Shown in pieces: positions 10,046 to 62,366 of a stretch of 64,000 nucleotides of DNA. Within the stretch, counting starts at the first letter, position 1. Each line of letters starts with the position of its first letter. Location of the stretch: the sequence record NC_019410.1. The stretch is one strand, 5' to 3'. The translations under genes were made by a program, and so were the position numbers. The notes under the pieces were generated by a model. It ran no database searches. It was not told the origin of the DNA and was given only the letters and a program-made list of their open reading frames with translations.

Positions 10046-10104
10046 CGTTGTCGTCGAAGGCCCTTCTAGCGAGTCGGTGTCAGGCTGTCAACACATGTCA
10101 GCCA
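10046..10104 (-). promoter_or_regulatory. repeated promoter-leader element
   Basis: TGGC-N9-TTGACA-N17-TAGAAG-..-CGACGACAACG-GGAGG; spacer contains CGAGTCG (GANTC). Confidence 0.85.
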
Positions 10105-10107
10105 AGA

Positions 10108-10719
10108 TCAGGCGGCGTTCGTCACCAGGGTTTCCAGGCGATCAAAGCCCAGATCGAGGCGACCCCACATCGACGAGGGCGTATGCGGCTTGACCACCTC
10201 GGTGAACCGCGCGCGCTCCTTCAGATACATGCGGGCCATGGGGATGTTCGGCTGGCCGGTCGCCGGGTCCTTGATCGAGGCCTCGACATTGGCGATCCGG
10301 TCGGCGAGCTTGAGGATGCAGGCCTTGGGGTGCTCGCCCAGCTTGCGATAGATGTCCTCGTTGCGGGCCTTGCGGTTGGGGCCAATGCCCGAGACCGCCC
10401 AGACCAGCGCTGCGACGTCCTCGCCGAACTTTTCCTTGATCATCTCCAGCCGCTGCTCGGGCGTCATGTCGAGATGGGTGTCCTCGATCACGTCGTGCAG
10501 CTTGGCGGCGGCCGTCCAGGTAAAGCCCAGGAAGCCGTAGTCGTCGAGGATGCGCTCGACCTTCTGGAGATGGTAGAGATAGGGCTGGCCGGCGTACTGC
10601 TGGTCCCCGTGGGCGGCGATGGCGAATTCCGTCGGGTCTTCCTGGCGCAGCGGCGCGCCCGGCGCCGTCGGAAGGCCCGTCAGGATGGAGGCGAGTTGGT
10701 CGAGCGAGGCGTCAGACAT
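10108..10719 (-). CDS. RelA/SpoT-type HD-domain hydrolase (small alarmone hydrolase / Mesh1-like)
   Basis: AHGDQ..AGQPY..H, LHDVIEDT, LKLADRIAN; no synthetase domain. Confidence 0.85.
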   Translation of the reverse strand: MSDASLDQLASILTGLPTAPGAPLRQEDPTEFAIAAHGDQQYAGQPYLYHLQKVERILDDYGFLGFTWTAAAKLHDVIEDTHLDMTPEQRLEMIKEKFGEDVAALVWAVSGIGPNRKARNEDIYRKLGEHPKACILKLADRIANVEASIKDPATGQPNIPMARMYLKERARFTEVVKPHTPSSMWGRLDLGFDRLETLVTNAA

Positions 10720-11125
10720 GGGGCTTCTCGGAGATCGGGGTGAAGACTTCCAGGCCGTCGACGATCTGCATCAGATGCGTCGGCGGGTGGGCGGGATTGT
10801 AGCGGATGTAGCCGGCGAGGCCGCCGTCGATCATCGCCCCGCCCCGCTCCTTGTAGTCGTGCCGGAAGCGCGAGACCAGGAATGAGCCGTCGGGCATCTC
10901 GATCGCCGAGAACTGGGCCTGTCGGATCGAGGCCGCCGAGGTGATGTAGAGCCCGCCGCCCAGCGGATGGGTGAAGAGCCCGAAGTAGTTGTCGTGGCCC
11001 TTCTCGCGATCCGGCGTCTCGGTGTAGAAGACGTGGAACGGCCCCTCGCGGTCGGGCAGGTCGTAATAGCCGACGTACTTGGCGTTGTAGTGCTTTTCGG
11101 CCCCGGCGATGTTGATGCTGCTCAT
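10712..11125 (-). CDS. phage hypothetical protein
   Basis: ATG overlaps HNH stop; SRFRHDY...MIDGG segment. Confidence 0.75.
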   Translation of the reverse strand: MSSINIAGAEKHYNAKYVGYYDLPDREGPFHVFYTETPDREKGHDNYFGLFTHPLGGGLYITSAASIRQAQFSAIEMPDGSFLVSRFRHDYKERGGAMIDGGLAGYIRYNPAHPPTHLMQIVDGLEVFTPISEKPHV

Positions 11126-11625
11126 GCGACCCTCAGGAATTCTCCCCAGGCGGGGAGGGCGTGCTTCAGATAGGCGGCGTGCGCCTCGTCCGGCGTCGTG
11201 TAGCACCCGAGATAGCGGTACACCCCGTTGATCGTGACCTGGGCCTGGAACGGCTTCGTCTTGCTCCGGCTCTTGGTCACGCCCTTGGGAAGCGCGCCGA
11301 CGTTCGGGCGGTTCACGAGGTTCTGGGACCGCGTCGCCTTCCGGAGGTTCTTGATCCGATTGTTGCGTCGGTTCAAGTCCTTGTGGTCGACATCGTGATC
11401 GGGCATCACCCCGTGGTGGATCGCCCAGGCCACCTTGTGGGCGGCGATTTGAATTCGCCGGCCGCCATAGGAGACCTTCATCACCCGATAGCCGTCCTTG
11501 GTCACCGAGCCGCAGCGCTTGCGGGACTTGGAGCCCCGCACGGTGATGGCGCCGGTGGCGGGATCGTACTTGTAGCGCGCCCGGAGGAAGTCGACCGGGA
11601 TCGAAAACTCTGCATCCCCCGACAT
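11122..11625 (-). CDS. HNH homing endonuclease with AP2-like C-terminal domain
   Basis: AHKVAW..HHG.MP..DVDHKDLNRRNNRIKNLR.AT.SQN; KGV...FQAQV..NG..RYLG.Y.TPDEAHAAY. Confidence 0.9.
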   Translation of the reverse strand: MSGDAEFSIPVDFLRARYKYDPATGAITVRGSKSRKRCGSVTKDGYRVMKVSYGGRRIQIAAHKVAWAIHHGVMPDHDVDHKDLNRRNNRIKNLRKATRSQNLVNRPNVGALPKGVTKSRSKTKPFQAQVTINGVYRYLGCYTTPDEAHAAYLKHALPAWGEFLRVA

Positions 11626-11629
11626 AGGA

Positions 11630-11869
11630 TTAGTCCTTCTGGGCGTGCCGCTTGAAGAGGAGGTAGAAGCCGTAGGCGACGAGCACCGGAATCCAGAGCA
11701 GGATCAGGGCCACGGTCTGACCGAGGGTCATGAAGAAGAACGCGGCCTTCCAGTCGTTGTTGTACTGGTTGTCGCGCACCGCGTGGACTTTCGGATAGTC
11801 GATCGCATAACGGTAGCCGGCCCGCGCGAGACCCAGCAGCATCCCGATGATGAAGTAGAGATCGGTCAT
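11630..11869 (-). CDS. small membrane protein
   Basis: Two hydrophobic segments, 79 aa. Confidence 0.7.
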   Translation of the reverse strand: MTDLYFIIGMLLGLARAGYRYAIDYPKVHAVRDNQYNNDWKAAFFFMTLGQTVALILLWIPVLVAYGFYLLFKRHAQKD

Positions 11870-11872
11870 GGC

Positions 11873-12139
11873 TTACTTCTCCGAGGCCTCGATCATCTTC
11901 TGGACGCCGGCGTTCAGCTTCTTGCGCAGGACCCAGAAGACCGGAATCCAGAACAGGGCGAACAGGCTGGCGGGCCAGAGGGCGCCGAGGACCAGACCGG
12001 TGATGAAGACGAACCAGCCGTAGATACCGAATTCGTCGAGGGTTCTGATCCCCACCTCGCGGACGAAGGTCGGGACGATGGTCGCGCCGGCGACCCACCA
12101 TCCGATGGCCAGGAAAAGGCCGACGAGCCAGTAGAACAT
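11873..12139 (-). CDS. small membrane protein
   Basis: Hydrophobic segments, 88 aa. Confidence 0.7.
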   Translation of the reverse strand: MFYWLVGLFLAIGWWVAGATIVPTFVREVGIRTLDEFGIYGWFVFITGLVLGALWPASLFALFWIPVFWVLRKKLNAGVQKMIEASEK

Positions 12140-12441
12140 CAGGGTTGTTCCTTCTCAAGACCCACGTCAGGGTCGTATTTCAGGATGACGCCGTCCTCGT
12201 TACGGTGCTCCATCAGCGGGAACCCCGAGACGAACTGCGGCACGAAGAGGTCGCGGCGCGGCTGCTGGAGCCAGATCAGGCCGGTCTCGGCGACCACCGC
12301 GCGCTCGGCCGGGGTAAGCTCCCAGCAGGAGATCACGCCCTCGGGGCCGGTGTAGGTGTGGAGCGGCGCGACCGTGTCCTCGTTCCCCGGAGCGGGGTTC
12401 CAGACCTTGTTGGCGCCGGCGAAATTACGAGGAACGGCCAT
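12139..12441 (-). CDS. phage hypothetical protein
   Basis: ISCWELTPAERA...IWL segment; coupled overlaps. Confidence 0.75.
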   Translation of the reverse strand: MAVPRNFAGANKVWNPAPGNEDTVAPLHTYTGPEGVISCWELTPAERAVVAETGLIWLQQPRRDLFVPQFVSGFPLMEHRNEDGVILKYDPDVGLEKEQP

Positions 12442-16671: not shown

Positions 16672-16958
16672 CAGGCCGCGAGCCCGCGCTGCTTCAAGGC
16701 GACGATCTGCTCGATCTCCTTGAGGATGTGGTCCGACAGGCGGTCGGTCCGTTCCTTGATGCCGGCGGGGACGCCGATCTTGCACTGACCGATCTCGTGC
16801 AGGCGGTCGGAGACGGCCTTCAGGTCGATCAGGGTGTCGCTGATCAGCACCTCGGCGAGGCCGATGGCCTCGGTCTGGATGGCGGCGATCCGCTGGGCGG
16901 TGGTCTGCGCCGATTGGCCCGCGACGAGGGCCAGGGCGGCGTTGTTCTTCTGGGTCAT
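16671..16958 (-). CDS. hypothetical protein
   Basis: First gene after promoter element, AAGGAG SD. Confidence 0.8.
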   Translation of the reverse strand: MTQKNNAALALVAGQSAQTTAQRIAAIQTEAIGLAEVLISDTLIDLKAVSDRLHEIGQCKIGVPAGIKERTDRLSDHILKEIEQIVALKQRGLAA

Positions 16959-16969
16959 GGGGTCTCCTT

Positions 16970-17019
16970 CGTTGTCGTCGGGCGTGACTTCTAGTTGGGT
17001 TCCTGGAGGCTGTCAACAC
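16970..17019 (-). promoter_or_regulatory. repeated promoter-leader element
   Basis: GTGTTGACA-N17-TAGAAG-..-CGACGACAACG-AAGGAG. Confidence 0.85.
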
Positions 17020-17281
17020 TTTCGCTCACCGGCGCGGCGCCGTAGTGCGCGACCAGGACAAGCCGGGCGCCGCAGGCGACCAGCGCGCCGCGCGCGTCGT
17101 AGATCAGCCGTCCGGCCTCCTCGCCGTTCTTGTCCAGGATGATGGCCTCCCTGGCGTAGGTCGGCTTGCCGCTCTTGCCCCGCTGGATGCGGATCGGAGG
17201 ATCATCCGTGCCGCGCTTGGTGTTGCGGTCGATGACCTGCCGGTTGATGTTGAGGACGCAGGTCTTGCGGGTGATCTTCAT
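16991..17281 (-). CDS. phage hypothetical protein
   Basis: LNINRQVI..N.KRG..DPPI ... CGARL; stop TAG is the -10 box. Confidence 0.75.
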   Translation of the reverse strand: MKITRKTCVLNINRQVIDRNTKRGTDDPPIRIQRGKSGKPTYAREAIILDKNGEEAGRLIYDARGALVACGARLVLVAHYGAAPVSESVDSLQEPN

Positions 17282-17586: not shown

Positions 17587-19004
17587 ATCAGCGCTCCTTG
17601 GCTCGGATCGGCCGGCGCGTAGACGGCGCGGTTGATGGTGGTCTCCGGCTCGCCCGAGCGCTTGTTGGCGCCGTGACGCTTGATCGTGGCCCGGATGGCG
17701 TAGCGCTTGCCGGCCTCGGGACGGTACTTGCCGGTGTGGAAGTTCACCACCGCCGAGCCGTCATCGCAGCGGATGGCCACGATGCAGGTCGTCTCGCCGA
17801 AGTCGTTGGTGTAGAGGTTGGTCCGCACGACCTCGCCCACGAAGTCCACACGCTGGCCCTCGGCGGCGTCGAGGTGCTTGGCAGGCGGGCGCTGGGGAGC
17901 GTCGGCCTTCTTGCGGGCGTCCTCCTCGCGCTCCAGGGCGCGGCCGACCGACAGACCGACAGCGGCGACGATCACCCCGATGCGCTTGACCAGGACGAAA
18001 TCTTCCTGGGCGAGCACCATCTTGATGTTCTCGTGGAACGGATTGCCCGGCTTCAGCGAGCGGATGTAGTCGGTGAAGCCCTCGCGGTCGAATTCCGGAT
18101 CGAAGCCCTTGTAGGAGTCGATGATCTCCTGGTTGCGCTTGCGCTCGTAGTCCGACAGGCCATAGCCCCGGTTGCCGAACATCAGCAGGCCGACATGCTT
18201 GCGCGATTCCTCCTTGCTGTAGCCGCCGAACCGGCGAGCCACGCGGTACGAGGTCCGCAGGAGTTCGCCCAGGTCGACGTACTCCTCGCCCTTGCGCCAG
18301 CCGCCCGGATCGCCCTTGAAGTTGTTCAGGTCATCCCAGAACGACAGCATGCGGACCGGATCGGCCCCCATATAGGCTTTCAGGCACGAGGCCCCGATCA
18401 TCTTGATCCCGTCGGCGGTCTCGCAGACGAAGGTGTGTTTGCGGCGCTGGTTGACGCCGCAGTGGGCGCACTCGCCAGCGTGTACACGCATCCCTTCCAC
18501 GACGTCGTTGGCGGTCTTGTCGACCAGCTTGAGGTAGTGCCCCGTCTTCTCGGCGGCTTCGTAGATGCCCAGGACGCGGCCCTTCTCGCCGACCATCGGC
18601 GGAACCGACAGGGTGATCTCGATGCGGCGCACCACCATGGCCTCGTCGCTCAGATAGGGCGAGGGAATGTCGACCACCTTGCGCTCCAGGACCTCCAGGG
18701 TCTGGGCGCCGTGGGCGGCCCGCTTCTGGAGCTTGGCCAGCAGGCGCATGAAGCGTTCCTCGACGGCGAAGCCCATCATGAAGGTCAGGACGGCTTGGCC
18801 GTCGCGCACGCCTTCCTGGGCCTCCCACATGGCGGTCCGGTGAGCCTCGCGCTCCTGCTCGTCCTCGAAGATCGACACGCCCCTGGCGGTCACGACCTCG
18901 ACGCCGTCGACCAGCACGCTGGCCTGATCGGCGACCGTCTCGGGACGCTCACCGTAGGTTTCCAGCATGTAGTCCTGGTAGCTGCCTTCGAATTCGCCAA
19001 ACAT
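17583..19004 (-). CDS. hypothetical protein with Cys/His motif and C-terminal OB-fold-like domain
   Basis: CAHCG..QRRK.TFV...GASCL; C-terminal GQRV.FVGEV...ATIKRHG...ETTINR. Confidence 0.8.
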   Translation of the reverse strand: MFGEFEGSYQDYMLETYGERPETVADQASVLVDGVEVVTARGVSIFEDEQEREAHRTAMWEAQEGVRDGQAVLTFMMGFAVEERFMRLLAKLQKRAAHGAQTLEVLERKVVDIPSPYLSDEAMVVRRIEITLSVPPMVGEKGRVLGIYEAAEKTGHYLKLVDKTANDVVEGMRVHAGECAHCGVNQRRKHTFVCETADGIKMIGASCLKAYMGADPVRMLSFWDDLNNFKGDPGGWRKGEEYVDLGELLRTSYRVARRFGGYSKEESRKHVGLLMFGNRGYGLSDYERKRNQEIIDSYKGFDPEFDREGFTDYIRSLKPGNPFHENIKMVLAQEDFVLVKRIGVIVAAVGLSVGRALEREEDARKKADAPQRPPAKHLDAAEGQRVDFVGEVVRTNLYTNDFGETTCIVAIRCDDGSAVVNFHTGKYRPEAGKRYAIRATIKRHGANKRSGEPETTINRAVYAPADPSQGALI

Positions 19005-19017
19005 GATCGGCTCCTCT

Positions 19018-19075
19018 CGCTGTCGTGAGGGAGCTTGTACGGACTCATGCCGATGCTGTCAACACTCTAACGCCA
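19018..19075 (-). promoter_or_regulatory. repeated promoter-leader element
   Basis: TGGC-N9-TTGACA-N17-TACAAG-..-CACGACAGCG-AGAGGAG; GANTC in spacer. Confidence 0.8.
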
Positions 19076-21944: not shown

Positions 21945-22303
21945 TGGTCCGACACCTTCGCCAGTTGCTTTTCCAGTTCGGCGCGCAGTTCAGCGTCGCT
22001 CAGGCCCAGGCGCTCCTTCATGAACGCCACCGCCTCGGCGGTGGTCTCGAAGGAGCGGGTCTCGGCATCGGTGCTGTCGCGCAGGCCAAGGATTTCGATC
22101 ACGCCCCAGAACGTCGCCCAGGCGGTGGCGATCAAGGCCGCCAGCGTGATGGCGAAGCCGAAGTCGAACTGGCGCGCGGCGCTCAGTTCCCCCACCTCGA
22201 CCGCCGTCCAGGCCACCGCCACGAGGCTCACCGAGGTGAGGTGAAGCAGGGCGCTCGTGCGGGTGTGGGTCGGGCGGACGGTCAGGGTCATCTTGTCTTG
22301 CAT
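21941..22303 (-). CDS. membrane protein
   Basis: ATG 22303 after GAGGAG; two hydrophobic segments. Confidence 0.75.
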   Translation of the reverse strand: MQDKMTLTVRPTHTRTSALLHLTSVSLVAVAWTAVEVGELSAARQFDFGFAITLAALIATAWATFWGVIEILGLRDSTDAETRSFETTAEAVAFMKERLGLSDAELRAELEKQLAKVSDQ

Positions 22304-22319
22304 GAGGGTCTCCTCTGCG

Positions 22320-22376
22320 GTTGTCGTCGCCCGCCTCTTAGGACAAGGCCGCAGCCTTGTCAACACATTCAAGCCA
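22320..22376 (-). promoter_or_regulatory. repeated promoter-leader element
   Basis: TGGC-N9-TTGACA-N17-TAAGAG-..-CGACGACAAC. Confidence 0.85.
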
Positions 22377-24082: not shown

Positions 24083-24252
24083 CGCAGTAGCTCTCCGTCG
24101 GCGATCCGGATGTCGCTCAGGGGATAGTCCTGGAAGAAGGCGCGCAGCCGCTGGCGTAGCATCCCCTCGACAGCCTCGGCGTTGTTCAAGGTCTCGAAGA
24201 GGTCCTCGAACATCTGGCGCTCATTGGCGCGTAAGGGTCGGGTCTTCGGCAT
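24079..24252 (-). CDS. hypothetical protein
   Basis: ATG 24252 after AAGGAG and promoter element. Confidence 0.75.
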   Translation of the reverse strand: MPKTRPLRANERQMFEDLFETLNNAEAVEGMLRQRLRAFFQDYPLSDIRIADGELLR

Positions 24253-24264
24253 CGAGGTCTCCTT

Positions 24265-24322
24265 CGTTGTCGTCATGCGGCTTCTAGGTCGACTTTGCCG
24301 GATTGTCAACACATTCCAGCCA
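24265..24322 (-). promoter_or_regulatory. repeated promoter-leader element
   Basis: TGGC-N9-TTGACA-N17-TAGAAG-..-TGACGACAACG-AAGGAG. Confidence 0.85.
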
Positions 24323-25130: not shown

Positions 25131-26148
25131 CGGCGACCTCCTCGACCTCTTCCTCGCTCGGGGCGATCGTCGAGCCCGAATATTCCTGGAGGTGGTCGAC
25201 CGCCTTCTGGGCCAGCGACGCGGCGGTGAAGATGAAGCGCTTGTCGCCCTTCAGGACCTTCAGCCAGGAGGCGACATAGGAGGCGTGGTCTTCGCGGACT
25301 TCCGGGGTCAGGCCGAGGATGGCGCAGAGGAAGGCCGAGCCCAGTTCGGCGACCAGTTCCTCGGCGGCGTAGGCCTCGTCACCGAAGCGCTTGCCGAACT
25401 CGCGGTTCAGGCGGTCCTCGCGACCGGTCCAGTGGACGAACTCGTGGCCGAGGGTGGCGTAGTAGCTCTCCTCGTCGCGGAAGGCGTCGAACTGGGGCAT
25501 CTGGATGAAGTCCAGGTGCGGCGAGAAGAAGGCCCGATGGCCGCCGTGGCGCACCTCGGCGCCCGTGGCGGCGAAGAACTTCTCGACCGCCGCGTTGCGC
25601 TCCAGGACCCGCTTGGCTTCCTCGGCGGGCGTCGCCGGGGCCGGGGCGGGCTTCTGGTAGAAGCGCTCGGGCAGACCGTCGATCTGCTCGACGTTGAACA
25701 CCAGATAGGACTTCAGGAACGGGATCATCCGCTCGACGTCCTTGCCGTTCGAGTCCTTCTCGGTCTTCTTGAACTTGGAGGCGTAGACGATCAGTTCGGA
25801 CTTCTCGCCCTTGCGGACCTGACCACCCAGGTCCCTGGCTTGGTTGTAGGTCATCCAGGTTGGGTTGGTGTAACCGCGCTCCTGCGCGGCGGCCCACAGG
25901 AGGACCACGTTGATCCCGGTGTAGCGCTGGCCCGTCACGCGGCGCGGATAGATCGCCATGCCAGCCGAGGCGCCGCCGGGAGCCGACCACGGCTTCAACC
26001 AGGGACGCACGCCAGCGTCGAGCGCGGCGACGATCTTGTCGGTGATCTTCTGATAGAGGTCGACCTTCACGGTTTCGGTCGAGGCCTTGCCCGTCTCCTT
26101 GGTGGAGCGCTTGGTCGGCTTCTTCTTGGCGGCGGTGGTCTTGGTCAT
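25117..26148 (-). CDS. ardC: ArdC-like antirestriction ssDNA-binding / zincin protein
   Basis: DLYQKITDKI..ALDAGV.PW.KPW, YTGINV..LW, WMTYNQA..LGGQVRKGEK, HEFVHWTG, YAAEELVAELGSA, HASYVASWL. Confidence 0.92.
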   Translation of the reverse strand: MTKTTAAKKKPTKRSTKETGKASTETVKVDLYQKITDKIVAALDAGVRPWLKPWSAPGGASAGMAIYPRRVTGQRYTGINVVLLWAAAQERGYTNPTWMTYNQARDLGGQVRKGEKSELIVYASKFKKTEKDSNGKDVERMIPFLKSYLVFNVEQIDGLPERFYQKPAPAPATPAEEAKRVLERNAAVEKFFAATGAEVRHGGHRAFFSPHLDFIQMPQFDAFRDEESYYATLGHEFVHWTGREDRLNREFGKRFGDEAYAAEELVAELGSAFLCAILGLTPEVREDHASYVASWLKVLKGDKRFIFTAASLAQKAVDHLQEYSGSTIAPSEEEVEEVADAAA

Positions 26149-26159
26149 CAGGGCCTCCT

Positions 26160-26217
26160 CGTTGTCGTCGAGGGGGTTCTAGCCGGCGACCGCGACCTTG
26201 TCAACACTCTCGCGCCA
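26160..26217 (-). promoter_or_regulatory. repeated promoter-leader element
   Basis: TGGC-N9-TTGACA-N17-TAGAAC-..-CGACGACAACG-AGGAGG. Confidence 0.88.
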
Positions 26218-27344: not shown

Positions 27345-27598
27345 GACTTGAGGCTCTGGCAGGCGAACGTGATCACGTCGCCGAGGGTGTTGAAATCCTC
27401 GGGGAACTGGACCGGCTCAGGGACGGCGAAGTCCTCCTCCAGGCACATCATCAACTCGATGATGTCCAGGCTGTCGAGGCCCAGATCATCTTCCAGCCGT
27501 AGCCCCTCGTCCATATCGTCGAGGGTGTACGACCGGTCGGTGATCGCATGGGCGTAGTCGAAGGTCGCCGCCTTGATCTCGTCGCGCGTGAAGGTCAC
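27341..27598 (-). CDS. acpP: acyl carrier protein
   Basis: LEDDLGLDSLDIIELMMCLEEDFAV with the phosphopantetheine DSL motif; FNTLGDVITF; acidic, 85 aa. Confidence 0.9.
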   Translation of the reverse strand: MTFTRDEIKAATFDYAHAITDRSYTLDDMDEGLRLEDDLGLDSLDIIELMMCLEEDFAVPEPVQFPEDFNTLGDVITFACQSLKS

Positions 27599-28329
27599 GG
27601 CTCTCCCCCTGGTGTCGTTTCGGCGCTTCTAGCCCTCCCAAGCAGAGCCGTCAACACATCAGCGCCACGCCAGACCCAGGATAGGCTCAGAACGAGGTCG
27701 CGGTCCTCATAGGCGGCGCTGCGCCCGGTGATCACCTTGATCGCCGAGAGCGGGCCAAACCGCCAGAAGACGACCGTGCGCGAGTCGTTGCGGCCGGGCA
27801 GGTGCTCCAGCAGCACGCGACGCTTGATCGCGAGGTGGCGCTGTTCCTTGTGGAGGACCAGGGCGATCTTGCATGTCGGATCGGACCCGAACCACCGGCG
27901 CCAGTAGCCCGGATTGTCGATGTTCTCGTAGAGCCGGCCGATCCGTTTGCTGACCGGGCGCAGGCCCGGCTCGCGCCGGCGCACGCTGAGCGGCGGGAAC
28001 GTGCAGGGCGGCCACTCGGCGAGCAAGCTCTGGCGCAGCCGGCGAAATTCCCAGGCCGGCATGGCGTTGTCCTTGGTGTTGTTGCACGCCACGCAGGCCG
28101 CCGCCAGATTGCTCTCGTGGTTCGATCCGCCCTCGGCCTTGGCCTCCAGGTGCTCGATCGTCACTTCGTCGGGCTCCAGCTTGCCGCCACCCCGGCCGAT
28201 CCGCCGGCGATAGGCCATCTGCCCCGTGCAATAGGTGCAGAGGCCGCCCGCCTCCAGGAAGAGGCGGTGGCGGCGGTTCGGCGCGGCGGGCGGTAGCGGG
28301 TCCTGGACCAGCACCTCAGATGAGGACAT
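27595..28329 (-). CDS. HNH endonuclease
   Basis: CTYC...TIEHL.AKAEGGSNHESNLAAAC.ACNNTK. Confidence 0.85.
   Translation of the reverse strand: MSSSEVLVQDPLPPAAPNRRHRLFLEAGGLCTYCTGQMAYRRRIGRGGGKLEPDEVTIEHLEAKAEGGSNHESNLAAACVACNNTKDNAMPAWEFRRLRQSLLAEWPPCTFPPLSVRRREPGLRPVSKRIGRLYENIDNPGYWRRWFGSDPTCKIALVLHKEQRHLAIKRRVLLEHLPGRNDSRTVVFWRFGPLSAIKVITGRSAAYEDRDLVLSLSWVWRGADVLTALLGRARSAETTPGGEP
27611..27667 (-). promoter_or_regulatory. repeated promoter-leader element (variant) for the ACP gene
   Basis: TGGC-N9-TTGACG-N17-TAGAAG-..-AACGACACC; embedded in HNH 3' end. Confidence 0.75.
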
Positions 28330-30229: not shown

Positions 30230-30813
30230 GCCTCGATCTCCTCGAACCGCCCATCCATGAATTCGGCCTCGCGCCGACCCCACATCTGGCCCTCGGCGTC
30301 GAGGTAGGTCAGCAGGGTCTCGTCATCGAGCACCGGGGTCTCGCACTGGATGCGGATCGTCCCGACCAGGGCGTATTCGCCGCCGCGCTTCCTGTGGCGG
30401 AAGCGCCGCATGCCGCGCGGAAGCTCCGCCAGGAAGGCCTTCAGGGCGTCCGCCACCTTGGCGACGCCGTGCGGGAAGTGCGAGCCCGGCCCGCGCACCC
30501 ATTGATAGATCGTCGCCAGGGCGAAGCGCCCGGCGGCGATCTCGCCCGTGGGGTCCTTGCGGATCATGTCCGGCGCGTAGTCTTCGAGATAGTTCGTCCC
30601 GAGGATCGCCATGCAGCGGGCCTCCTCCACCGAGGTCGGCAGACGCAGGTGATCGCGATCCAGGCGGTCGGCCTCGGCGAGCGACTTGATCACCCCGACC
30701 AGGATCGCCGCCTTCTCGGCGTGCCACTGCCGTCCGCCCGGCTCTGGGGCGCGCTCGGCGTGGTAGAGGTGGTAGTCCAGTATCTCGTGGACGTCTTCGC
30801 TCTGTCGGGACAT
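30226..30813 (-). CDS. hypothetical protein with C-terminal DUF1653-like domain
   Basis: FRHRKRGGEY.LVG...TY...WGR...EFMDGRFE. Confidence 0.75.
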   Translation of the reverse strand: MSRQSEDVHEILDYHLYHAERAPEPGGRQWHAEKAAILVGVIKSLAEADRLDRDHLRLPTSVEEARCMAILGTNYLEDYAPDMIRKDPTGEIAAGRFALATIYQWVRGPGSHFPHGVAKVADALKAFLAELPRGMRRFRHRKRGGEYALVGTIRIQCETPVLDDETLLTYLDAEGQMWGRREAEFMDGRFEEIEA

Positions 30814-30824
30814 AGGGTTCCTTC

Positions 30825-30874
30825 CGTTGTCGTCACCCGCGACACTAGATGGTCGGAGGTGTGACTGTCAACAC
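30825..30874 (-). promoter_or_regulatory. repeated promoter-leader element
   Basis: GTGTTGACA-N18-TAGTGT-..-TGACGACAACG-GAAGGA. Confidence 0.8.
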
Positions 30875-30875
30875 T

Positions 30876-31391
30876 TCACGTCAGAGCTAGACGGCGACGA
30901 TAGAACAGGCGCCGGCCGTTGAAGAACAGACGGATGCGGAATTCCTCGTCGAGGGTCCCGATGTCGAGGCTAAAGCCCAGGAGGCCCAGGCTGACATAGG
31001 CATGGCGCCCGAAGCTCCCCGGAATGGCGTCCATGCCGCCGGCGACGAACCGGATGAGCCAGAGCCAGCCCAGGTCGAATCGCTTGAAGCCCTGCCATTC
31101 GATCGAGCGCCAGGAGAAGCCGCCGCCCAGCAGGGTGATGTCGATGTCCAGGTTCCAGCCGTCGGCCAGCGGATCGCGGCGGCGGTGGTAGCGCAGGCGA
31201 AAGAAGCCGCCGTCGAGGTCGAAGTTCGGGATCGCGCCAAAAGCCAGACGGCGCAGACGCGCCAGGACATAGCCGACCGGGAAGATCACCAGGGCGTAGA
31301 GACTCAGGAGGAAGACCAGGGCCACGGCGCACCACAGGCCATGCCAGAAGAACCCGAGCATCATCCCAAGCTTTGGCGAATGGTCGGGCAT
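30876..31391 (-). CDS. membrane protein
   Basis: N-terminal hydrophobic helix. Confidence 0.65.
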   Translation of the reverse strand: MPDHSPKLGMMLGFFWHGLWCAVALVFLLSLYALVIFPVGYVLARLRRLAFGAIPNFDLDGGFFRLRYHRRRDPLADGWNLDIDITLLGGGFSWRSIEWQGFKRFDLGWLWLIRFVAGGMDAIPGSFGRHAYVSLGLLGFSLDIGTLDEEFRIRLFFNGRRLFYRRRLALT

Positions 31392-32687: not shown

Positions 32688-32980
32688 CAGTCGACCTTCG
32701 GTTCGCGCTTGAAGCGGCCGTTCTCGTCATAGCGGTCCGGGTTGGCGCCGGGGGCGTGGAAGCCCGCCATCGAGCCGATCTCCATGGCCGCGCGCTGCGC
32801 CGGCGTGACGCCCATGCGCTGGTTCATGGCGGTGACGGCGGCCTCGCCCTGGACCCCGTAGTCGGTCGCGTAGTAGCCGGTCTCATCCTTCTTCAGGATG
32901 ACCGTCTCGCCCGTCTCGATGTTGATCGAGTAGCAGAGGTCGGGCAGGGCCGCGAGATTGATCTGGCGTTGGGTCAGCAT
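32687..32980 (-). CDS. hypothetical protein (mobile-element-type domain)
   Basis: ETGYY.TD...N.RMGVTPAQRAAM.IGSM.GF..PGANP; first gene after promoter. Confidence 0.8.
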   Translation of the reverse strand: MLTQRQINLAALPDLCYSINIETGETVILKKDETGYYATDYGVQGEAAVTAMNQRMGVTPAQRAAMEIGSMAGFHAPGANPDRYDENGRFKREPKVD

Positions 32981-32992
32981 GGAGGCCTCCTT

Positions 32993-33051
32993 GTTGTCGT
33001 CGAGGATGGCTTCTAGCCGGCCCAGGTCACGTTGTCAACACTCGACAGCCA
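32993..33051 (-). promoter_or_regulatory. repeated promoter-leader element
   Basis: TGGC-N9-TTGACA-N17-TAGAAG-..-CGACGACAAC-AAGGAGG. Confidence 0.88.
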
Positions 33052-37315: not shown

Positions 37316-37376
37316 TGTCGTTGTGTCGACATAAGCTCTAGCCGTGGTTTTCCGGCCTGTCAACACACAACCGCCA
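37316..37376 (-). promoter_or_regulatory. repeated promoter-leader element (variant leader)
   Basis: TGGC-N9-TTGACA-N17-TAGAGC-..-CGACACAACGAC-AAGGAGG. Confidence 0.82.
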
Positions 37377-40783: not shown

Positions 40784-40963
40784 CTACTCCTTGATCTCGA
40801 CGCTCTTGGGCGGATTGGGATGAGGAACGAAGACCAGGGCCACGTCCTGACCGCCGGTATAGCGCGTGCGTCGGCTATAGAGCCAGCCGCCTTCCACCGC
40901 CAACCGCTCGGTCACCTGACCATCGGCTTCGTCGATCTTTTCCCACTTGGACTTCTTAGCCAT
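40784..40963 (-). CDS. 59-aa protein missed by the ORF track
   Basis: MAKKSKWEKIDEADGQVTERLAVEGGWLYSRRTRYTGGQDVALVFVPHPNPPKSVEIKE; GAGGGG SD; fills the gap after the leftward promoter. Confidence 0.8.
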   Translation of the reverse strand: MAKKSKWEKIDEADGQVTERLAVEGGWLYSRRTRYTGGQDVALVFVPHPNPPKSVEIKE

Positions 40964-40984
40964 CTTCCCCTCGAATTTGGCGGC

Positions 40985-41013
40985 ACCCTAGAGGAGCGTT
41001 CGAGTGTTGACAA
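40985..41013 (-). promoter_or_regulatory. leftward promoter of the divergent hub
   Basis: TTGTCA (41013-41008)-N17-TAGGGT (40990-40985). Confidence 0.6.
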
Positions 41014-41047
41014 GCACCAATGTCGCTGGCTTTCGAGTGTTGACAAG
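40999..41047. repeat. 16-bp direct repeat TTCGAGTGTTGACAAG (40999-41014, 41032-41047)
   Basis: Identical copies 33 nt apart at the strand switch. Confidence 0.9.
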
Positions 41048-41085
41048 TCCGGTGCTCGTCTATAGGGGAGACCGGGACGACAACG
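41027..41085 (+). promoter_or_regulatory. rightward promoter-leader element of the divergent hub
   Basis: TGGC-N9-TTGACA-N17-TAGGGG-..-GACGACAACG-AAAGGAG. Confidence 0.85.
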
Positions 41086-41098
41086 AAAGGAGCCTGCC

Positions 41099-41407
41099 AT
41101 GCGCTATGTGCTCGACTATGCCGACGACCGGGACAACCCGGTCTATACCGATTTCCAGGCCGGCGACCGCAAGGCGGCCATCGCCAAGGCCAAGCGCCTG
41201 CTCGCCAAGGCGATCAAGACCGTCGATTTCTCGCTCCACGGGGCCTACATCTTCGTCGATCCGACGGGCGTCGCCCGCGACGTCGACGACATGATCCCGT
41301 TCGGCATGCTGAGCACGATGGCCTACGCCAGCATCGTCACCCCGTCGATGATCTCGTTCGACGACCGCGACGCCAAGGCGGCGATCGCCGCGAGGCTCGC
41401 CCAATGA
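41099..41407 (+). CDS. hypothetical protein
   Basis: First rightward gene, AGGAG SD. Confidence 0.8.
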   Translation: MRYVLDYADDRDNPVYTDFQAGDRKAAIAKAKRLLAKAIKTVDFSLHGAYIFVDPTGVARDVDDMIPFGMLSTMAYASIVTPSMISFDDRDAKAAIAARLAQ

Positions 41408-43299: not shown

Positions 43300-43554
43300 A
43301 TGCTGACCAAGGACGAGATCACCTTCGCGGGCCTGATCAAGGCCATGGAGGACGCCCGACGCACCGCCAAGGCGGCGGGCGATCTCGTCAGCACGGCCGA
43401 GATCGACCGCTGGTTCAAGGAACACGCGCCGATCATCCGGGAGGTCCGCGACAAGGCCGAGGCCGACGAATTCGACGCTGGCGCGAGAGTGTTGACAGCC
43501 TCTGAGGAAGGGGCTAAAGACACCCTCGACGACAGCGAAAGGAGCCTGCCTTGA
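43300..43554 (+). CDS. hypothetical protein
   Basis: 3' end runs through a promoter element. Confidence 0.65.
   Translation: MLTKDEITFAGLIKAMEDARRTAKAAGDLVSTAEIDRWFKEHAPIIREVRDKAEADEFDAGARVLTASEEGAKDTLDDSERSLP
43479..43537 (+). promoter_or_regulatory. repeated promoter-leader element
   Basis: TGGC-N9-TTGACA-N17-TAAAGA-..-CGACGACAGCG-AAAGGAG. Confidence 0.85.
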
Positions 43555-46612: not shown

Positions 46613-46671
46613 TGGCGCGAAAGTGTTGACAGCCTGAAGGGACTCCTCTACACCCACGCTCGACGACAACG
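46613..46671 (+). promoter_or_regulatory. repeated promoter-leader element
   Basis: TGGC-N9-TTGACA-N17-TACACC-..-CGACGACAACG-AGAGGAG; GANTC at 46641-46645 and 46603-46607. Confidence 0.85.
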
Positions 46672-46683
46672 AGAGGAGTTCCC

Positions 46684-48444
46684 ATGGCCGAGACCATGTC
46701 CCTGAGTTTCCGGATCGAAGGCGCCGCTCTGGTGGAGCGGGCGCGCGATCGCGTCATCGAAGGTAACTGGGAGCACGGCCTGCGCATCCTGGTCGAGGGC
46801 CTGCACGGCATGTCCTACGAACTCGCGATCGACATCCTGCTTGGCAAGCACACCCTGGGCGGCTGGTCCTCGGACCCCGAGGGCGTCTATCTCACCGACC
46901 AGGACCCGGAGGACGAGACTTTCAAGCGCTACAAGGAAACCCTCGACTACCAGTTCGCCGGCGTCTTCAAGCTGGACGACGGCCGGATCATGCGCCCCTA
47001 CGCGGTGGTCGACAGCTTCTCCAAGATCGACTTCGACTCTAGGGTCCGCTTCCTGCGGCTGGCCCAAGGCTCGGACCCGGTGTTCTCGCGCCCCAAGCGC
47101 TATCACGACCCCCGCGCCGAGATCAACGGCGAGGAGATCGACTGGGCCTATCGCGCCCTGCACTACGCCGACGAGCCGACCCAGGACATCGTCCGTCTGG
47201 TCCGCATGGAGGGCTTCCACCCCACGATCCGCGCGGCGGTCCTGTTCAAGGAAGTCCGCGACTATCCCAAGCTCCTGCTCCCGAAGGTCGAGACCGACGC
47301 CCAGAAGGCCGTCGACGTGGCGATCAAGGCCCAGCGTGGTCTCTCCAAGCGCGGGCACGTCTACGAGTATGGCGCTGGTCAGGACTTCGACAAGGAGCAC
47401 TACAAGACCACCATGGGGATCGATCAGGTCCCCACCGCCTGGACCGTGCGCAACCCGAAATACGTCGATCCCGACGCCAAGTTCGTGAAGGACACCCTGG
47501 CCGAGATCGACGGCGACAAGCGCTCGGCGCCGGCCGGTGATTACGCCGGCGCCATGAACCGGATGATCAAGGATGAGATGGACGGCGGCATGGACATCAG
47601 CGCGGCCGTCGCCATGACCCAGGCCAAGATGGCGCTGCTGGGCGGCATGGCCGAGGACCCCGAGCAGCGCCTGCGGGCGATCAACGACGCCTACGCCGCC
47701 AAGTACGAGAAGGCCGAGGGCCGCAGCGTCGAGGAGTACCGCAAGGCCATCATCGCCCAGGCCGGCGATGATTTCTTTGATCTCGCGTACACGGATGTGA
47801 ACGGCAAGGACGTCGTCCTGAAGGTCCCGACCGCGCCGTTCGAGCAATGGGCGCTCTGGCGCACGGCCGGCTCCCACCTCGCCAAGCCCTGGAAGCGGGT
47901 GACCTACACCGGCTTCAAGACGTTCGGCGATGATCCCTATCACACCGACTGGGTGCTGGGCGCTGGGCTCAATCCTGAGGATTGGCCGATCATCGAGGCC
48001 GACAACCCGCCGCTCCACAAGGCCGCCTGGGACAAGCGCTTCCGGCTGGCCGAGGAGAAGCTGGGCGGCAACATGCGCGTCCTGCTCGGCAAGGGCTTCG
48101 TGACCGGCAAGATCGTGATGCTCAAGCCGGGCGAGGCCCTGTCACCGGGTGAGATCGGCGTGATCCGCAACGCCGGCCCCGACTACGTCCAGGCCGCCCA
48201 GAGCGCGATCGAGCACAACACCGCCTTGATCTGCGAGAACGGCGGCAGCGTCGCCCACCTCGTGGTCGAGTACCTGGACAAGCCCCTGCGCCTGACCCGG
48301 ATCGAGAACGCGCGCAAGATTTTCAAGGACGGCATGACCGTCTACCTCGACTTTGACAAGTCGACGCGAGAGATCGCCAAGGGTGGCCTGGGGCCGAGCC
48401 CTGCCGATCTTGGCCTCGACACGGAATGGGAGATTTTCGAATGA
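46684..48444 (+). CDS. large protein with C-terminal PEP-utiliser (phospho-His swivelling) domain
   Basis: C-terminus GKG.VTGKIV...GEIGVIRNAGPDY...ALICENGGSVAHLVV...NARKIFKDGMTVYLD. Confidence 0.7.
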   Translation: MAETMSLSFRIEGAALVERARDRVIEGNWEHGLRILVEGLHGMSYELAIDILLGKHTLGGWSSDPEGVYLTDQDPEDETFKRYKETLDYQFAGVFKLDDGRIMRPYAVVDSFSKIDFDSRVRFLRLAQGSDPVFSRPKRYHDPRAEINGEEIDWAYRALHYADEPTQDIVRLVRMEGFHPTIRAAVLFKEVRDYPKLLLPKVETDAQKAVDVAIKAQRGLSKRGHVYEYGAGQDFDKEHYKTTMGIDQVPTAWTVRNPKYVDPDAKFVKDTLAEIDGDKRSAPAGDYAGAMNRMIKDEMDGGMDISAAVAMTQAKMALLGGMAEDPEQRLRAINDAYAAKYEKAEGRSVEEYRKAIIAQAGDDFFDLAYTDVNGKDVVLKVPTAPFEQWALWRTAGSHLAKPWKRVTYTGFKTFGDDPYHTDWVLGAGLNPEDWPIIEADNPPLHKAAWDKRFRLAEEKLGGNMRVLLGKGFVTGKIVMLKPGEALSPGEIGVIRNAGPDYVQAAQSAIEHNTALICENGGSVAHLVVEYLDKPLRLTRIENARKIFKDGMTVYLDFDKSTREIAKGGLGPSPADLGLDTEWEIFE

Positions 48445-50250: not shown

Positions 50251-50480
50251 TCGAGCACGTCTATCGTCGCGATCCGCGCGGGCGCGATTACGGGCTTCAA
50301 TGCCTGGACCTCGACGAGGCGCTGAAGATCGTCGCGGCCGAGAAGCAGGACTTCCTTCTGCGCTTGGTCGCGGTCCTGCACGAGAACAACCTTCTGCGCG
50401 ACGCCGACGTCATGGAACTGCTCGGCAGGGGCTGGGCGCTCGAACCCTATGATCTCCACTACAGCGACGACGACGATTAG
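50247..50480 (+). CDS. hypothetical protein
   Basis: Coupled overlap. Confidence 0.65.
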   Translation: MIEHVYRRDPRGRDYGLQCLDLDEALKIVAAEKQDFLLRLVAVLHENNLLRDADVMELLGRGWALEPYDLHYSDDDD

Positions 50481-50529
50481 GCGTTGACAACACTCTCGCG
50501 CCAACATAGAACCACCCTCGACGACAACG
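50481..50529 (+). promoter_or_regulatory. repeated promoter-leader element
   Basis: GCGTTGACA-N17-TAGAAC-..-CGACGACAACG-AGGAGG. Confidence 0.85.
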
Positions 50530-50540
50530 AGGAGGCTTCG

Positions 50541-50924
50541 ATGAAGCTCGCGACCCAAGACCGCACCGACCCGCGCCTGAACGCGCGCTATCGCCTCGCC
50601 AAGGCGGTGTTCTACTATGGCGGCCCGCACGAGTACCCGATCCACCTGAACGACTGGTGGAACGAGGTGACGCCGGCCGACGTCGAGGACCGCATCTCCG
50701 AACTCTGCCGCGAACTCTCCAAGCTGTCGGGTCAGACCCTGGCGCCGGCGACCTTCTACGAGCGGATGAAGCTGGGCTTCGTCGACCTCCCGGAAGTGAA
50801 GGACGAGGACTTCGCCACCCTGTCGGAGACGACCCGCAACAACCTGCTCGCCATGCAGGACCGCTTCTCGGTCCACGGGAGCGGCTTCATGCTCTACTGG
50901 AACATCGTCAAAGAGGAGGCCTGA
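50541..50924 (+). CDS. hypothetical protein
   Basis: ATG 50541 after AGGAGG (track start 50484 falls in the promoter). Confidence 0.8.
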   Translation: MKLATQDRTDPRLNARYRLAKAVFYYGGPHEYPIHLNDWWNEVTPADVEDRISELCRELSKLSGQTLAPATFYERMKLGFVDLPEVKDEDFATLSETTRNNLLAMQDRFSVHGSGFMLYWNIVKEEA

Positions 50925-51986: not shown

Positions 51987-52044
51987 TGGCGTTCTTGTGT
52001 TGACAAGGCCAGCGCCGCTGGCCTAGAACGTCGTGGACGACAAC
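51987..52044 (+). promoter_or_regulatory. repeated promoter-leader element
   Basis: TGGC-N9-TTGACA-N18-TAGAAC-..-GACGACAAC-AGGAGG. Confidence 0.85.
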
Positions 52045-52054
52045 AGGAGGGACC

Positions 52055-52411
52055 ATGCCGCTCTACGACTTTCCGACCGGACCGACCACGATGGCGGACA
52101 TCGAGGCGTTCGTCGCCGGCGCCCAGGCGGTGGTGACCGCCCAACTGGCCAAGGCCTTTCCCGGCGTGTCCGCGCCGGTCCTGGAGATCGCGCCGGTTCA
52201 CCCGAGCAGCCAGTTCGCCAAGATCGTCGCGGTCGACGCCAGCCAGCGCTCGGCCTGGGCGTTCGTCCGACTGGAGAACGGCCTGATCTACAAGCCCTCG
52301 TCGTGGAAGGTGCCGGCCAAGCATGCGCGTGGCACGATCCACACCGCCGCGCACGGCGCCGAGTACGTCGACTGGACCGGCCCGCGCTACGTCAAGGACC
52401 TGCGTCGATGA
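52055..52411 (+). CDS. phage hypothetical protein
   Basis: SAWAFV..ENG.IYKP.SWK.PAKHARG.I...WTGP.Y. Confidence 0.8.
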   Translation: MPLYDFPTGPTTMADIEAFVAGAQAVVTAQLAKAFPGVSAPVLEIAPVHPSSQFAKIVAVDASQRSAWAFVRLENGLIYKPSSWKVPAKHARGTIHTAAHGAEYVDWTGPRYVKDLRR

Positions 52412-59696: not shown

Positions 59697-59755
59697 TGGC
59701 GTTAGAACGTTGACAGCCTCGGCGTGATGTCATAAAAGCCTCCTCGACGACAACG
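59697..59755 (+). promoter_or_regulatory. repeated promoter-leader element
   Basis: TGGC-N9-TTGACA-N17-TAAAAG-..-CGACGACAACG-AGGAGG. Confidence 0.88.
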
Positions 59756-59766
59756 AGGAGGGCCAC

Positions 59767-60186
59767 ATGGCTTACGCAATTCCGGACCTGAGCACGTTCA
59801 CGTTCCACGATCCCAAGGTCGAACGGTTCGCCAAGGCGATGATCTCGACGATCGAGACCGCCCAGACCATCCTCACGGCCTTCGCCAACGATCTCGCCGA
59901 CAATCCTCTTCAGGCGTTCGAGCATAGCTACGGCGCCAAGATGGCCGCCGCCCACAGGGACGTCGCCAAGGGGCTGCTCAACGAAGTCCTCGACGCGCTG
60001 CTGCACGGTCAGGACAAGACCTGGGCCTACATCGGCCAGGACCTGCGCGAGCGGCTGATGTATCGCGTGATCTACGCGGCCTCGAACCCGCCGCGCTCGA
60101 CCAACGTCGAAGGCAACGACATGGCCCGCTTCGTCCTGCGCGCCGAGGCCGACATGCTCGACCGCATGACCAAGAGCCGCTTCTGA
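59767..60186 (+). CDS. hypothetical protein
   Basis: First gene after promoter. Confidence 0.8.
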   Translation: MAYAIPDLSTFTFHDPKVERFAKAMISTIETAQTILTAFANDLADNPLQAFEHSYGAKMAAAHRDVAKGLLNEVLDALLHGQDKTWAYIGQDLRERLMYRVIYAASNPPRSTNVEGNDMARFVLRAEADMLDRMTKSRF

Positions 60187-61098: not shown

Positions 61099-61099
61099 T

Positions 61100-61158
61100 T
61101 GGCGTTCAAGTGTTGCCAAAGCTGATCTGATCAGCTAGAACCCTCGCCGACGACAACG
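61100..61158 (+). promoter_or_regulatory. repeated promoter-leader element
   Basis: TGGC-N9-TTGCCA-N17-TAGAAC-..-CGACGACAACG-AGGAGG. Confidence 0.85.
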
Positions 61159-61168
61159 AGGAGGCCCC

Positions 61169-61363
61169 ATGCCGCACCTGAGCAAGACGCCGTTCGACTT
61201 CGACTTCACCAGTGACGCTTTGGCGGCAACGCTGGAATTCGAGCGCAACACGACCGAGTTCTACCGCTACGAGACAGTCTTCACATCCGGTCGTGCGGCA
61301 ACTCACGTTCTCGTCATGGAAGAAGACGGGAATTTCGTCGGCTTCGTCTCGGGTGAAGCCTGA
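61169..61363 (+). CDS. hypothetical protein
   Basis: First gene after promoter. Confidence 0.7.
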   Translation: MPHLSKTPFDFDFTSDALAATLEFERNTTEFYRYETVFTSGRAATHVLVMEEDGNFVGFVSGEA

Positions 61364-61755
61364 TGCAGCACCTCGACCCCCGCATCGGCTACCTGAACTC
61401 GGGCGTCTACTACGCCTTCGTCCACGGCTACGACAAGCCCGAGACGCGCGGCACGCTCGAAGAGGTCGAGATCGCCCTGGGCCTGCGCAAGCCGGCGATC
61501 GCGAAGGCGCCGGCGTTCGAAGAGACCCGCACCCGCTCGGGCGGCTGGAAGCGCACCTTCGGCTCGATCAACGGCAAGCCCCTGACCCTGACGATCAGCG
61601 AGGCCGACAGCGTCTGCGCCGACGTCGAGTGCGGTCGGTTCGGCTGCTCACTGTCGCTGCTCTGCGACTTCGGGACGGTCGAGGAAGACGGCCCGCACGT
61701 GCGCCAGTCCACCATCGACCAGATGGTCGAGTGGGCGCTGACCAAGGGCTGGTAG
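61363..61755 (+). CDS. hypothetical protein
   Basis: Coupled overlap. Confidence 0.7.
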   Translation: MQHLDPRIGYLNSGVYYAFVHGYDKPETRGTLEEVEIALGLRKPAIAKAPAFEETRTRSGGWKRTFGSINGKPLTLTISEADSVCADVECGRFGCSLSLLCDFGTVEEDGPHVRQSTIDQMVEWALTKGW

Positions 61756-61989
61756 ATGAGCCGCATCCGTGTCATCGACCGCGACGGGTTCATGCAGGGC
61801 TGGGTCGACGCCCGCGTCGGCCTGCCGACCTATTCTGGCCCCGTCACCCGCTGGACCGAGAAGGGCTCGTTCTGGACCACCGGAGCCGACGGCGAGGAGC
61901 GCCTTTGGAAGGCCGGCAACCACCAGCCCTGCGTCTACAAGAGCAAGCTCCGCAAGAGCGACATCATCCACGCGCGACGGGAGGGCTAA
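61756..61989 (+). CDS. hypothetical protein
   Basis: Abuts upstream stop. Confidence 0.65.
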   Translation: MSRIRVIDRDGFMQGWVDARVGLPTYSGPVTRWTEKGSFWTTGADGEERLWKAGNHQPCVYKSKLRKSDIIHARREG

Positions 61990-61990
61990 C

Positions 61991-62308
61991 ATGAGCCTGC
62001 TGGCCATCTATTTGACGGGCGCGGCGCTCACCGGCGCGGCGACGGCCGTCTACCTCTTCAAGGTCCGGGCGCCGGCGACCAAGGAGACCTACACCACCAC
62101 CTGGGGCTATGTCGAAACCGACGACGTCAACGAGACCGGCAACCACCTGGGGGCGATCCTCCTGATGGCGCTCTTCTGGTTCGTCATGGTTCCGATGGGG
62201 ATCGTCATGGGCCTCTGGCATCTGCTGGTCCGCGCCGTAGACAAGGCTTGGCGCCGCCGCACGTCGCGCCGCGAGAAGACGCACGTCGGCACCCATCGCT
62301 ATCTGTGA
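61991..62308 (+). CDS. membrane protein
   Basis: Two hydrophobic segments. Confidence 0.7.
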   Translation: MSLLAIYLTGAALTGAATAVYLFKVRAPATKETYTTTWGYVETDDVNETGNHLGAILLMALFWFVMVPMGIVMGLWHLLVRAVDKAWRRRTSRREKTHVGTHRYL

Positions 62309-62324
62309 TCGCCGCCAGCCCGGC

Positions 62325-62366
62325 TGGCTTCAGTGTGTTGACGGCGCGTCGCTCGCCCGCTAAGAA
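62325..62366 (+). promoter_or_regulatory. promoter element without GACGACAAC leader
   Basis: TGGC-N9-TTGACG-N17-TAAGAA. Confidence 0.75.

Follow-up and report, generated by a model that had tools for sequence, protein, structure and literature searches.

A TGGC box adjoining the -35 element in early promoters of phiCbK-type Caulobacter phages

In 15 promoters of the 64,000-nucleotide stretch of DNA analysed here (NC_019410.1; hereafter the window), the tetranucleotide TGGC is found exactly 9 nucleotides upstream of the -35 hexamer, which raises the question whether it is a promoter element in its own right and, if so, what reads it. The window corresponds to positions 124001-188000 of Caulobacter virus Karma (JX100811, 100% identity), a relative of phage phiCbK (99% identity), and covers the early genes of a giant siphophage of the phiCbK type. 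Its G+C content is 65-67%, and its genes, mostly small and unnamed, form a leftward block (1-40963) and a rightward block (41099-64000) that diverge near position 41000, where the GC skew flips its sign. We conclude that the TGGC belongs to a real regulatory element, an upstream promoter box that has apparently not been described before; no description of the box or of these promoters was found in the publications on the phiCbK genome, on the XRE protein and the transcriptome and on CtrA, or by full-text searches.

The box and its promoter module

The pattern TGGC-N9-TTGMCR occurs 15 times in the window, and every coordinate and strand reported in a preliminary description of this sequence was reproduced. 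Only 0.53 sites are expected: in the 100 dinucleotide-preserving shuffles used as null the maximum was three sites, and none of the 100 reached 15. The -35 hexamer is TTGACA in twelve sites, TTGACG in two and TTGCCA in one. All sites point in the same direction as the annotated downstream gene, and the start codon follows TGGC at 68-74 nucleotides in 14 of them and at 100 nucleotides in the one at 62325. The whole Karma genome has 21 sites, comprising those of the window, five at the starts of other genes and one within terL, which looks like a chance match. If TGGC is counted upstream of all TTGMCR hexamers, a peak appears at offset 9 only and the neighbouring offsets stay at background level (21 versus about 3.5 per offset in Karma, 16 versus about 1.5 in phage Rogue). 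A pattern scan of IMG/VR with TGGCG-N6-GTGTTGACA yielded isolated, scattered matches only, among the matches listed.

The TGGC had been described as invariant; it is indeed constant in these sites, but this constancy follows from the search pattern itself, and the real motif is longer than four bases. A 14-bp box, Y-TGGC-K-N3-R-W-GTG, has TGGC at its 5´ edge; counted from the hexamer, which it directly abuts, the box occupies positions -14 to -1, with Y at -14, K at -9, R at -5, W at -4 and a nearly invariant GTG at -3 to -1. In conventional promoter numbering the box covers approximately -49 to -36 and is centred near -42.5. Its interior has no symmetry: the only four-base correspondence is that of TGKC with GMCA of the -35 element, the centres of which are 15 bp apart. 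A palindrome TGGC-N11-GCCA was considered and rejected, since it is perfect only with TTGCCA as -35 element and is not kept in Rogue. A weak A+T enrichment is found at -17 to -22 in the same numbering from the hexamer, and inside the box only the W at -4 is A+T.

The box is the first part of a larger module, in which it is followed by TTGACA, a 17-nucleotide spacer, (GC)TAGAAG/C, about 6 nucleotides, CGACGACAAC, GAGGAGG, 5-8 nucleotides and the start codon. The TA of the -10 element, which mostly reads (G)CTAGAAG/C, is placed 17 nucleotides from the -35 element in 14 of the 15 sites and 18 nucleotides from it in the remaining one, so that the core adjoining the box is a sigma73 consensus promoter (TTGACA-N17-TAGAAG). 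The Caulobacter sigma73 consensus is TTGaCg / GCtANAWC (PMC13004042), and the cassettes, with TTGACA(G/A)(G/C)C, a 17-nucleotide spacer and GCTAGAAG/C, resemble it (TTGaCgS ... GCtANAWC) in both elements: their -35 sequences are close to TTGACA/TTGaCg and the -10 elements follow at a spacing of 16-18 nucleotides. Unlike the phage cassettes, the host consensus is described in the searchable literature without an element upstream of the -35 hexamer. Several cassettes partly overlap the 3´ end of the preceding gene, showing that the box is retained irrespective of the coding context.

A scan made without TGGC revealed further promoters of the same class that lack the tetranucleotide, thus about three quarters of the class carry the box. 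The -35 hexamers of the TGGC-less promoters are located at approximately 17016-17011, 30871-30866 and 50484-50489 and, in weaker promoters, at 2159-2154, 8088-8083 and 14498-14493. These had been listed before as promoters without TGGC, and they are promoter-like and lack it, but the coordinates then given mark the -10 element or the gene start, not the -35 element.

Conservation, lineage distribution and timing

In the syntenic 100 kb of phage Rogue, which is placed in another genus (about 78% nucleotide identity), 15 such promoters are found. Pairing of Karma and Rogue promoters by their downstream genes resulted in 14 orthologous pairs, in which the box stands out as a footprint: the four TGGC positions have 1, 0, 0 and 0 mismatches, the GTG has none and the whole -35 hexamer has one in total. 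The sole change at a TGGC position falls in a pair without TGGC. The flanking positions from -50 to -14 each have about 7 mismatches in 14 pairs and the spacer positions 4-9, and the conserved region begins sharply at -14/-13. Thus, at orthologous promoters of a related phage the box is kept no less strictly than the -35 element. Its presence is stable as well, since the TGGC status agrees in all 14 pairs: 11 have TGGC in both phages and three lack it in both (GTGA/GTGA, CTGA/CTGA and GAGA/TAGA in Karma/Rogue). The earlier proposal that TGGC defines a subclass of promoters is borne out by this evolutionary stability.

Ten boxes were found in the 50 kb of phiCbK examined. In the Brevundimonas phage Bajun, 10 promoters of this class are present in 39 kb, two of which have TGGC and three TGTC at the same offset. 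The 280 kb scanned of phage Colossus, which infects the same host, contain three TGGC-N9 matches, none of them in a promoter context. The early promoters of Colossus instead have the form GAGAG/GAGTG-TTGACA or TTGACG...TTTCTTTACA with a TGACGATCA-type leader, and CcrPW, a phage of the same genus as Colossus, likewise has GAGAG/GAGTG-TTGACA promoters without TGGC. The box therefore exists, has a rigid geometry, is under purifying selection and is limited to certain phage lineages. Its conservation in Rogue, phiCbK and Bajun and its absence from Colossus and CcrPW mark it as a functional, asymmetric, rigidly placed and lineage-specific element.

The promoters with TGGC drive early genes. In phiCbK, the orthologue of the gp230-gp229-gp228 promoter, a TGGC promoter at 156570, drives gp218-gp216, and tgrL (gp216) is the third gene of this operon; tgrL transcripts peak 15 minutes after infection and then drop (PMC10688885). 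Among the phiCbK genes that are on by 15 minutes, a declining "early" group has been distinguished from a maintained "constitutive" group (PMC10688885). The promoters of the window are listed in Table 1.

Table 1. Promoter cassettes of the window that carry TGGC, and selected promoters without it. Positions are those of the window; the TGGC column gives the substituted bases where TGGC is missing.
Feature	Position	Strand	TGGC	-35 element	-10 element or spacer	Start codon	Remarks
gp170 cassette, early promoter	10028..10104	-	10104-10101	10091-10086	10068-10063	ATG 10030	Rogue orthologue with TGGC
gp188 cassette	19002..19075	-	19075-19072	19062-19057	19039-19034	ATG 19004	same box in phiCbK
gp195 cassette	22301..22376	-	22376-22373	22363-22358		ATG 22303	promoter within 3´ end of gp196
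gp199-gp198 operon cassette (winged helix-turn-helix, wHTH)	24250..24322	-	24322-24319	24309-24304		ATG 24252	start supported by ribosome-binding site
gp203 cassette (ArdC-like)	26146..26217	-	26217-26214	26204-26199		ATG 26148	
gp208 cassette (acyl carrier protein)	27596..27667	-	27667-27664	TTGACG 27654-27649		GTG 27598	
gp220 cassette	32978..33051	-	33051-33048	33038-33033		ATG 32980	box identical in Rogue
gp230-gp229-gp228 operon cassette	37301..37376	-	37376-37373	37363-37358		GTG 37303	gp228 is the TgrL/XRE orthologue
gp236 cassette, first rightward operon at divergent site	41027..41101	+	41027-41030	41040-41045		ATG 41099	
gp245 cassette	43479..43553	+	43479-43482	43492-43497		TTG 43551	
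gp251 cassette	46613..46686	+	46613-46616	46626-46631		ATG 46684	
gp262 cassette	51987..52057	+	51987-51990	52000-52005	18-nucleotide spacer	ATG 52055	
gp280 cassette	59697..59769	+	59697-59700	59710-59715		ATG 59767	ACG in place of GTG
gp284 cassette	61100..61171	+	61100-61103	TTGCCA 61113-61118		ATG 61169	Rogue orthologue TTGACA
gp288 promoter	62325..62427	+	62325-62328	TTGACG 62338-62343		ATG 62425	leader atypically long, without CGACGACAAC
gp185 promoter, TGGC-less, same class	16956..17029	-	GTGA	17016-17011			CGACGACAAC leader; GTGA in Rogue too
gp216 promoter, TGGC-less, same class	30811..30884	-	CTGA	30871-30866			CTGA in Rogue too
gp258 promoter, TGGC-less, same class	50471..50543	+	CGAC	50484-50489			
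gp235-gp234 operon promoter (GcrA-like), TGGC-less, leftward	40961..41013	-		TTGTCA 41013-41008	N17, TAGGGT	ATG 40963	

What may read the box

The position of the box, roughly -49 to -36, is the one at which class II activators and the C-terminal domain of the RNA polymerase alpha subunit (alpha-CTD) contact DNA, as had been stated before. The exclusion of two other site types was confirmed as well. The box is not a sigma54 site, since its spacing is 2 nucleotides longer than that of TGGCAC-N5-TTGC (in which GG and GC are 10 nucleotides apart) and a full sigma70-type -10 element follows downstream; it is not a CtrA site either, TTAA-N7-TTAA being missing from all 15 cassettes. We favour the interpretation that a sequence-specific protein docks at the box, next to sigma region 4 or alpha, and give it a probability of about 40%. 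Such a protein would occupy the class II position and would co-regulate the TGGC subclass of the host-sigma73-type early promoters in phages of the phiCbK group; the factor would be lineage-specific, probably phage-encoded, and would strengthen or prioritise the binding of RNA polymerase. The excess of sites over expectation, the fixed offset, the fixed length of the module, the Karma/Rogue footprint, the lineage distribution and the timing of tgrL are all consistent with it. We infer three steps here, namely that the reader is a protein other than RNA polymerase, that it is phage-encoded and that its effect is positive.

Several known systems resemble the box in part. Class II sites, such as those of CRP and FNR at -41.5, of lambda cI (OR2/PRM) and of LuxR at -42.5, also abut the -35 element at a fixed distance in a co-regulated set of promoters, and the box agrees with them in position. 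In contrast to the box, they are dyad-symmetric for binding of dimers, usually accompany a poor -35 element and have a known protein; the box lacks dyad symmetry and is found on consensus promoters. T4 MotA boxes and lambda cII sites share with it that a phage-specific sequence at the -35 region assigns the temporal class. However, MotA boxes replace the -35 element and need AsiA, and cII sites are TTGC-N6-TTGC repeats straddling a weak -35 element, whereas the TGGC box lies wholly upstream of an intact one.

A number of points weigh against a docking site for an activator. Since the cores already match the sigma73 consensus (TTGACA, 17-nucleotide spacer, GCTAGAAG), they should fire without an activator, and a comparison with the TGGC-less promoters of the same class showed core elements that are not obviously weaker or stronger. 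The box is asymmetric, unlike the sites of dimeric class II activators. In addition, a phage-encoded factor would have to be made first, and a host factor or RNA polymerase itself could also be the reader.

The preliminary description had proposed a site for a phage or host activator that defines a promoter subclass, naming GcrA, the XRE protein and the wHTH proteins as candidates; the class II position fits this proposal, the XRE protein fits it poorly and the wHTH protein gp198 not at all. The XRE protein TgrL (Karma gp228) is disfavoured: its published chromatin immunoprecipitation sequencing motif is yNCAAsC...G with the core CAAsC, its position weight matrix, searched for TGGC and GCCA, contains neither, and a homologue is present in Colossus, which has no box. 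The wHTH protein gp198 is excluded, being missing from phiCbK although phiCbK has boxes. Among the other annotations, gp173 ("DNA-binding") was rejected as a transcription factor, since it is an HNH endonuclease (HNH_3). The Bajun gene annotated as "MotA" (L133 37237-37878) is assigned to the PHROG of Karma gp150 and has no Pfam MotA match. Colossus gp133 (L130 3619-4473) is annotated as "RNA polymerase alpha C-terminal domain" and has no Karma homologue.

The main rival to a protein docking site, which we regard as a possible but rather doubtful explanation, is that the box is a shut-off operator, at which a phage repressor bound to TGGC...GTG(TTGACA) either dislodges RNA polymerase or traps it. 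In that case, TGGC operons would fall after about 15 minutes and the TGGC-less promoters of the same class would keep going; the declining and the constitutive groups reported for phiCbK (PMC10688885) are the pattern expected of a subclass-specific operator. A repressor would also agree with consensus core promoters that need no help and with a box contiguous with the -35 element, the outer four bases of which form an inverted repeat with that element in the TGTC variants of Bajun and in the two promoters with TTGCCA. However, the half-sites, with centres 15 bp apart, would not lie on one face of the DNA, the interior of the box has no symmetry, and the palindrome is not conserved (TTGCCA at 61113-61118 in Karma, TTGACA in Rogue).

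A little less probable, and in our view unlikely, is that the host RNA polymerase itself reads the box, as a G+C-type UP-like element or as an extended -35 element, making the early promoters exceptionally strong. T4 early promoters have conserved upstream regions that are thought to make them exceptionally strong. Like these regions and UP elements, the box is an extra block just 5´ of the -35 element in strong phage early promoters used by the host polymerase. It falls into the range of UP elements (-40 to -60) and coincides with the proximal alpha-CTD subsite beside sigma region 4; its rigid spacing and single orientation agree with such a reading, as does the weak A+T enrichment upstream, and early promoters must run on unmodified host polymerase. 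UP elements are, however, A+T-rich and are read in the minor groove by alpha-CTD, also in Caulobacter, whereas the box has an invariant TGGC and is rich in G+C. The alpha-CTD of C. crescentus binds a narrowed A+T-rich minor groove (PMC13004042), which together with the G+C-rich box and the fact that Colossus manages without it makes this domain an unlikely reader. Furthermore, both Colossus and CcrPW have promoters without TGGC in the same host, and a quarter of the promoters of the class are stably without the box.

It appears improbable, though worth considering, that the phage GcrA paralogue (Karma gp234, phiCbK gp222), alone or together with its operon partners gp235 and gp232, has been retargeted to unmethylated TGGC at about -47 as a private class II-like activator. 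Of the candidates named, GcrA is the only one with a distribution that matches that of the box: GcrA, gp235 and gp232 are present in Karma, phiCbK, Rogue and Bajun, thus in every box-bearing lineage examined, and absent from Colossus (Gill 2012 and this comparison), but this co-occurrence may be one evolutionary contrast only. The gp234 protein is a full-length member that matches the entire GcrA family profile, the sigma-binding part included, and its own operon promoter at the divergent site is TGGC-less, so that its expression could come first. Characterised GcrA binds sigma domain 2 as a tethered monomer and reads methylated GANTC (m6A; YGAKTCG); its known sites are confined to -20, -30 or +5 to +30, which has been ascribed to the linker length (PMC4647560, PMC9976885). 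The box contains no GANTC, which is found in the spacer of only three of the 15 promoters, and is situated about 17-27 bp further 5´ than the upstream sites known for GcrA. Since it is thus without GANTC and beyond the known reach of GcrA, this protein is only a minority possibility; the reader may equally be one of the numerous early proteins without a name, or a protein of the host.

That TGGC has no function of its own and was carried along in recent copies of one cassette is hardly credible: the cassettes are alike over about 70 nucleotides, and three TGGC-less promoters with an identical spacer show that duplication occurs, but within Karma the copies differ in the spacer, in the flanks and in the bases that separate TGGC from GTG, the Karma/Rogue footprint contradicts this view with TGGC unchanged between genera and its neighbours saturated with changes, and the box persists in a Brevundimonas phage.

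Surrounding loci and a second promoter class

The leader (C)TCGACGACAACGAGGAGG precedes the start codon in the cassettes of the window (for instance at 26148-26175 and 59739-59769) and also occurs in Rogue, in Bajun and at promoters without TGGC; Colossus has it in the form TGACGATCA. Its presence in TGGC-less promoters and in Colossus indicates that the leader is older than the TGGC box. A leader hairpin masking the Shine-Dalgarno sequence was considered and rejected, the predicted stems having just 3-4 bp (-1 to -6 kcal/mol); the leader is conserved as a sequence and we claim no structure for it. An annotated rho-independent terminator (10036-10063) is located in the 5´ leader of gp170, between the -10 element and the start codon. 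It consists of GGCCT...AGGCC followed by a T run, and the same leader is present at Karma 188923 and in Rogue. A terminator hairpin is also found immediately upstream of the gp230-gp229-gp228 cassette.

The block gp196-gp202 (22369-25130), which includes the wHTH gene gp198, is missing from phiCbK, where the ArdC-like gene is directly followed by the gp195 orthologue; the promoter cassettes that flank the block may serve as recombination points. With the annotated start of gp199 at 24369, the entire TGGC promoter would be placed within the gene, and the geometry of the cassette and the ribosome-binding site point to the ATG at 24252 as the true start. The spacer ACACTCTCGCGCCAACA is identical in three TGGC-less promoters (window 50484-50512, Karma 188923 and 191530), which suggests a recent duplication of a promoter cassette.

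At the divergent site the two promoters are arranged back to back (40990-41045). The -35 element of gp235-gp234, TTGTCA, is the reverse complement of GTGTTGACAA on the plus strand, which is located 37 nucleotides upstream of the rightward -35 element.

Outside the window a second promoter class was found, with (A/T)GTCGT-GAATC directly 5´ of TTGAC(A/T/G). Its 18 Karma sites (19600-116271 and 206318) are all located in structural, lysis and replication modules, and the window contains none. In Colossus a variant, TGCCAG-GAATC-TTGAC, is used. Many of these promoters have GTTAACCAT or TTAACCA 8-35 nucleotides downstream of the -35 element, resembling the short CtrA-binding motif (examples are Karma 19600, 22543, 47512, 101831, 107814 and 206318 and Colossus 41867 and 82961). 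TGAATCT/AGATTCA is the lowest-ranked GcrA site of the host (PMC4647560). A dependence of the second box (GAATC-TTGAC) on the phage GcrA was considered and dropped, since Colossus has no GcrA and keeps its TGCCAG-GAATC-TTGAC variant. Judged from these sites, Karma seems to use one common -35 element and to vary the 13 bases upstream of it according to class.

PhiCbK serves as the standard phage in work on the Caulobacter cell-cycle model, and it orders its approximately 340 genes with the host RNA polymerase alone. The box provides a sequence rule that divides the early promoters into two stable subclasses and, being short and mutable, a handle by which the regulator may be found. Taken with the second box outside the window, it suggests a simple scheme, in which a common -35 element is preceded by class-specific bases just 5´ of it. 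The consensus cassettes are in addition ready-made modules of strong promoter and leader for Caulobacter genetics. If the GcrA paralogue were indeed the reader, its retargeting would represent a new recognition mode and a new geometry for the GcrA family, with a host cell-cycle cofactor marking phage early promoters.

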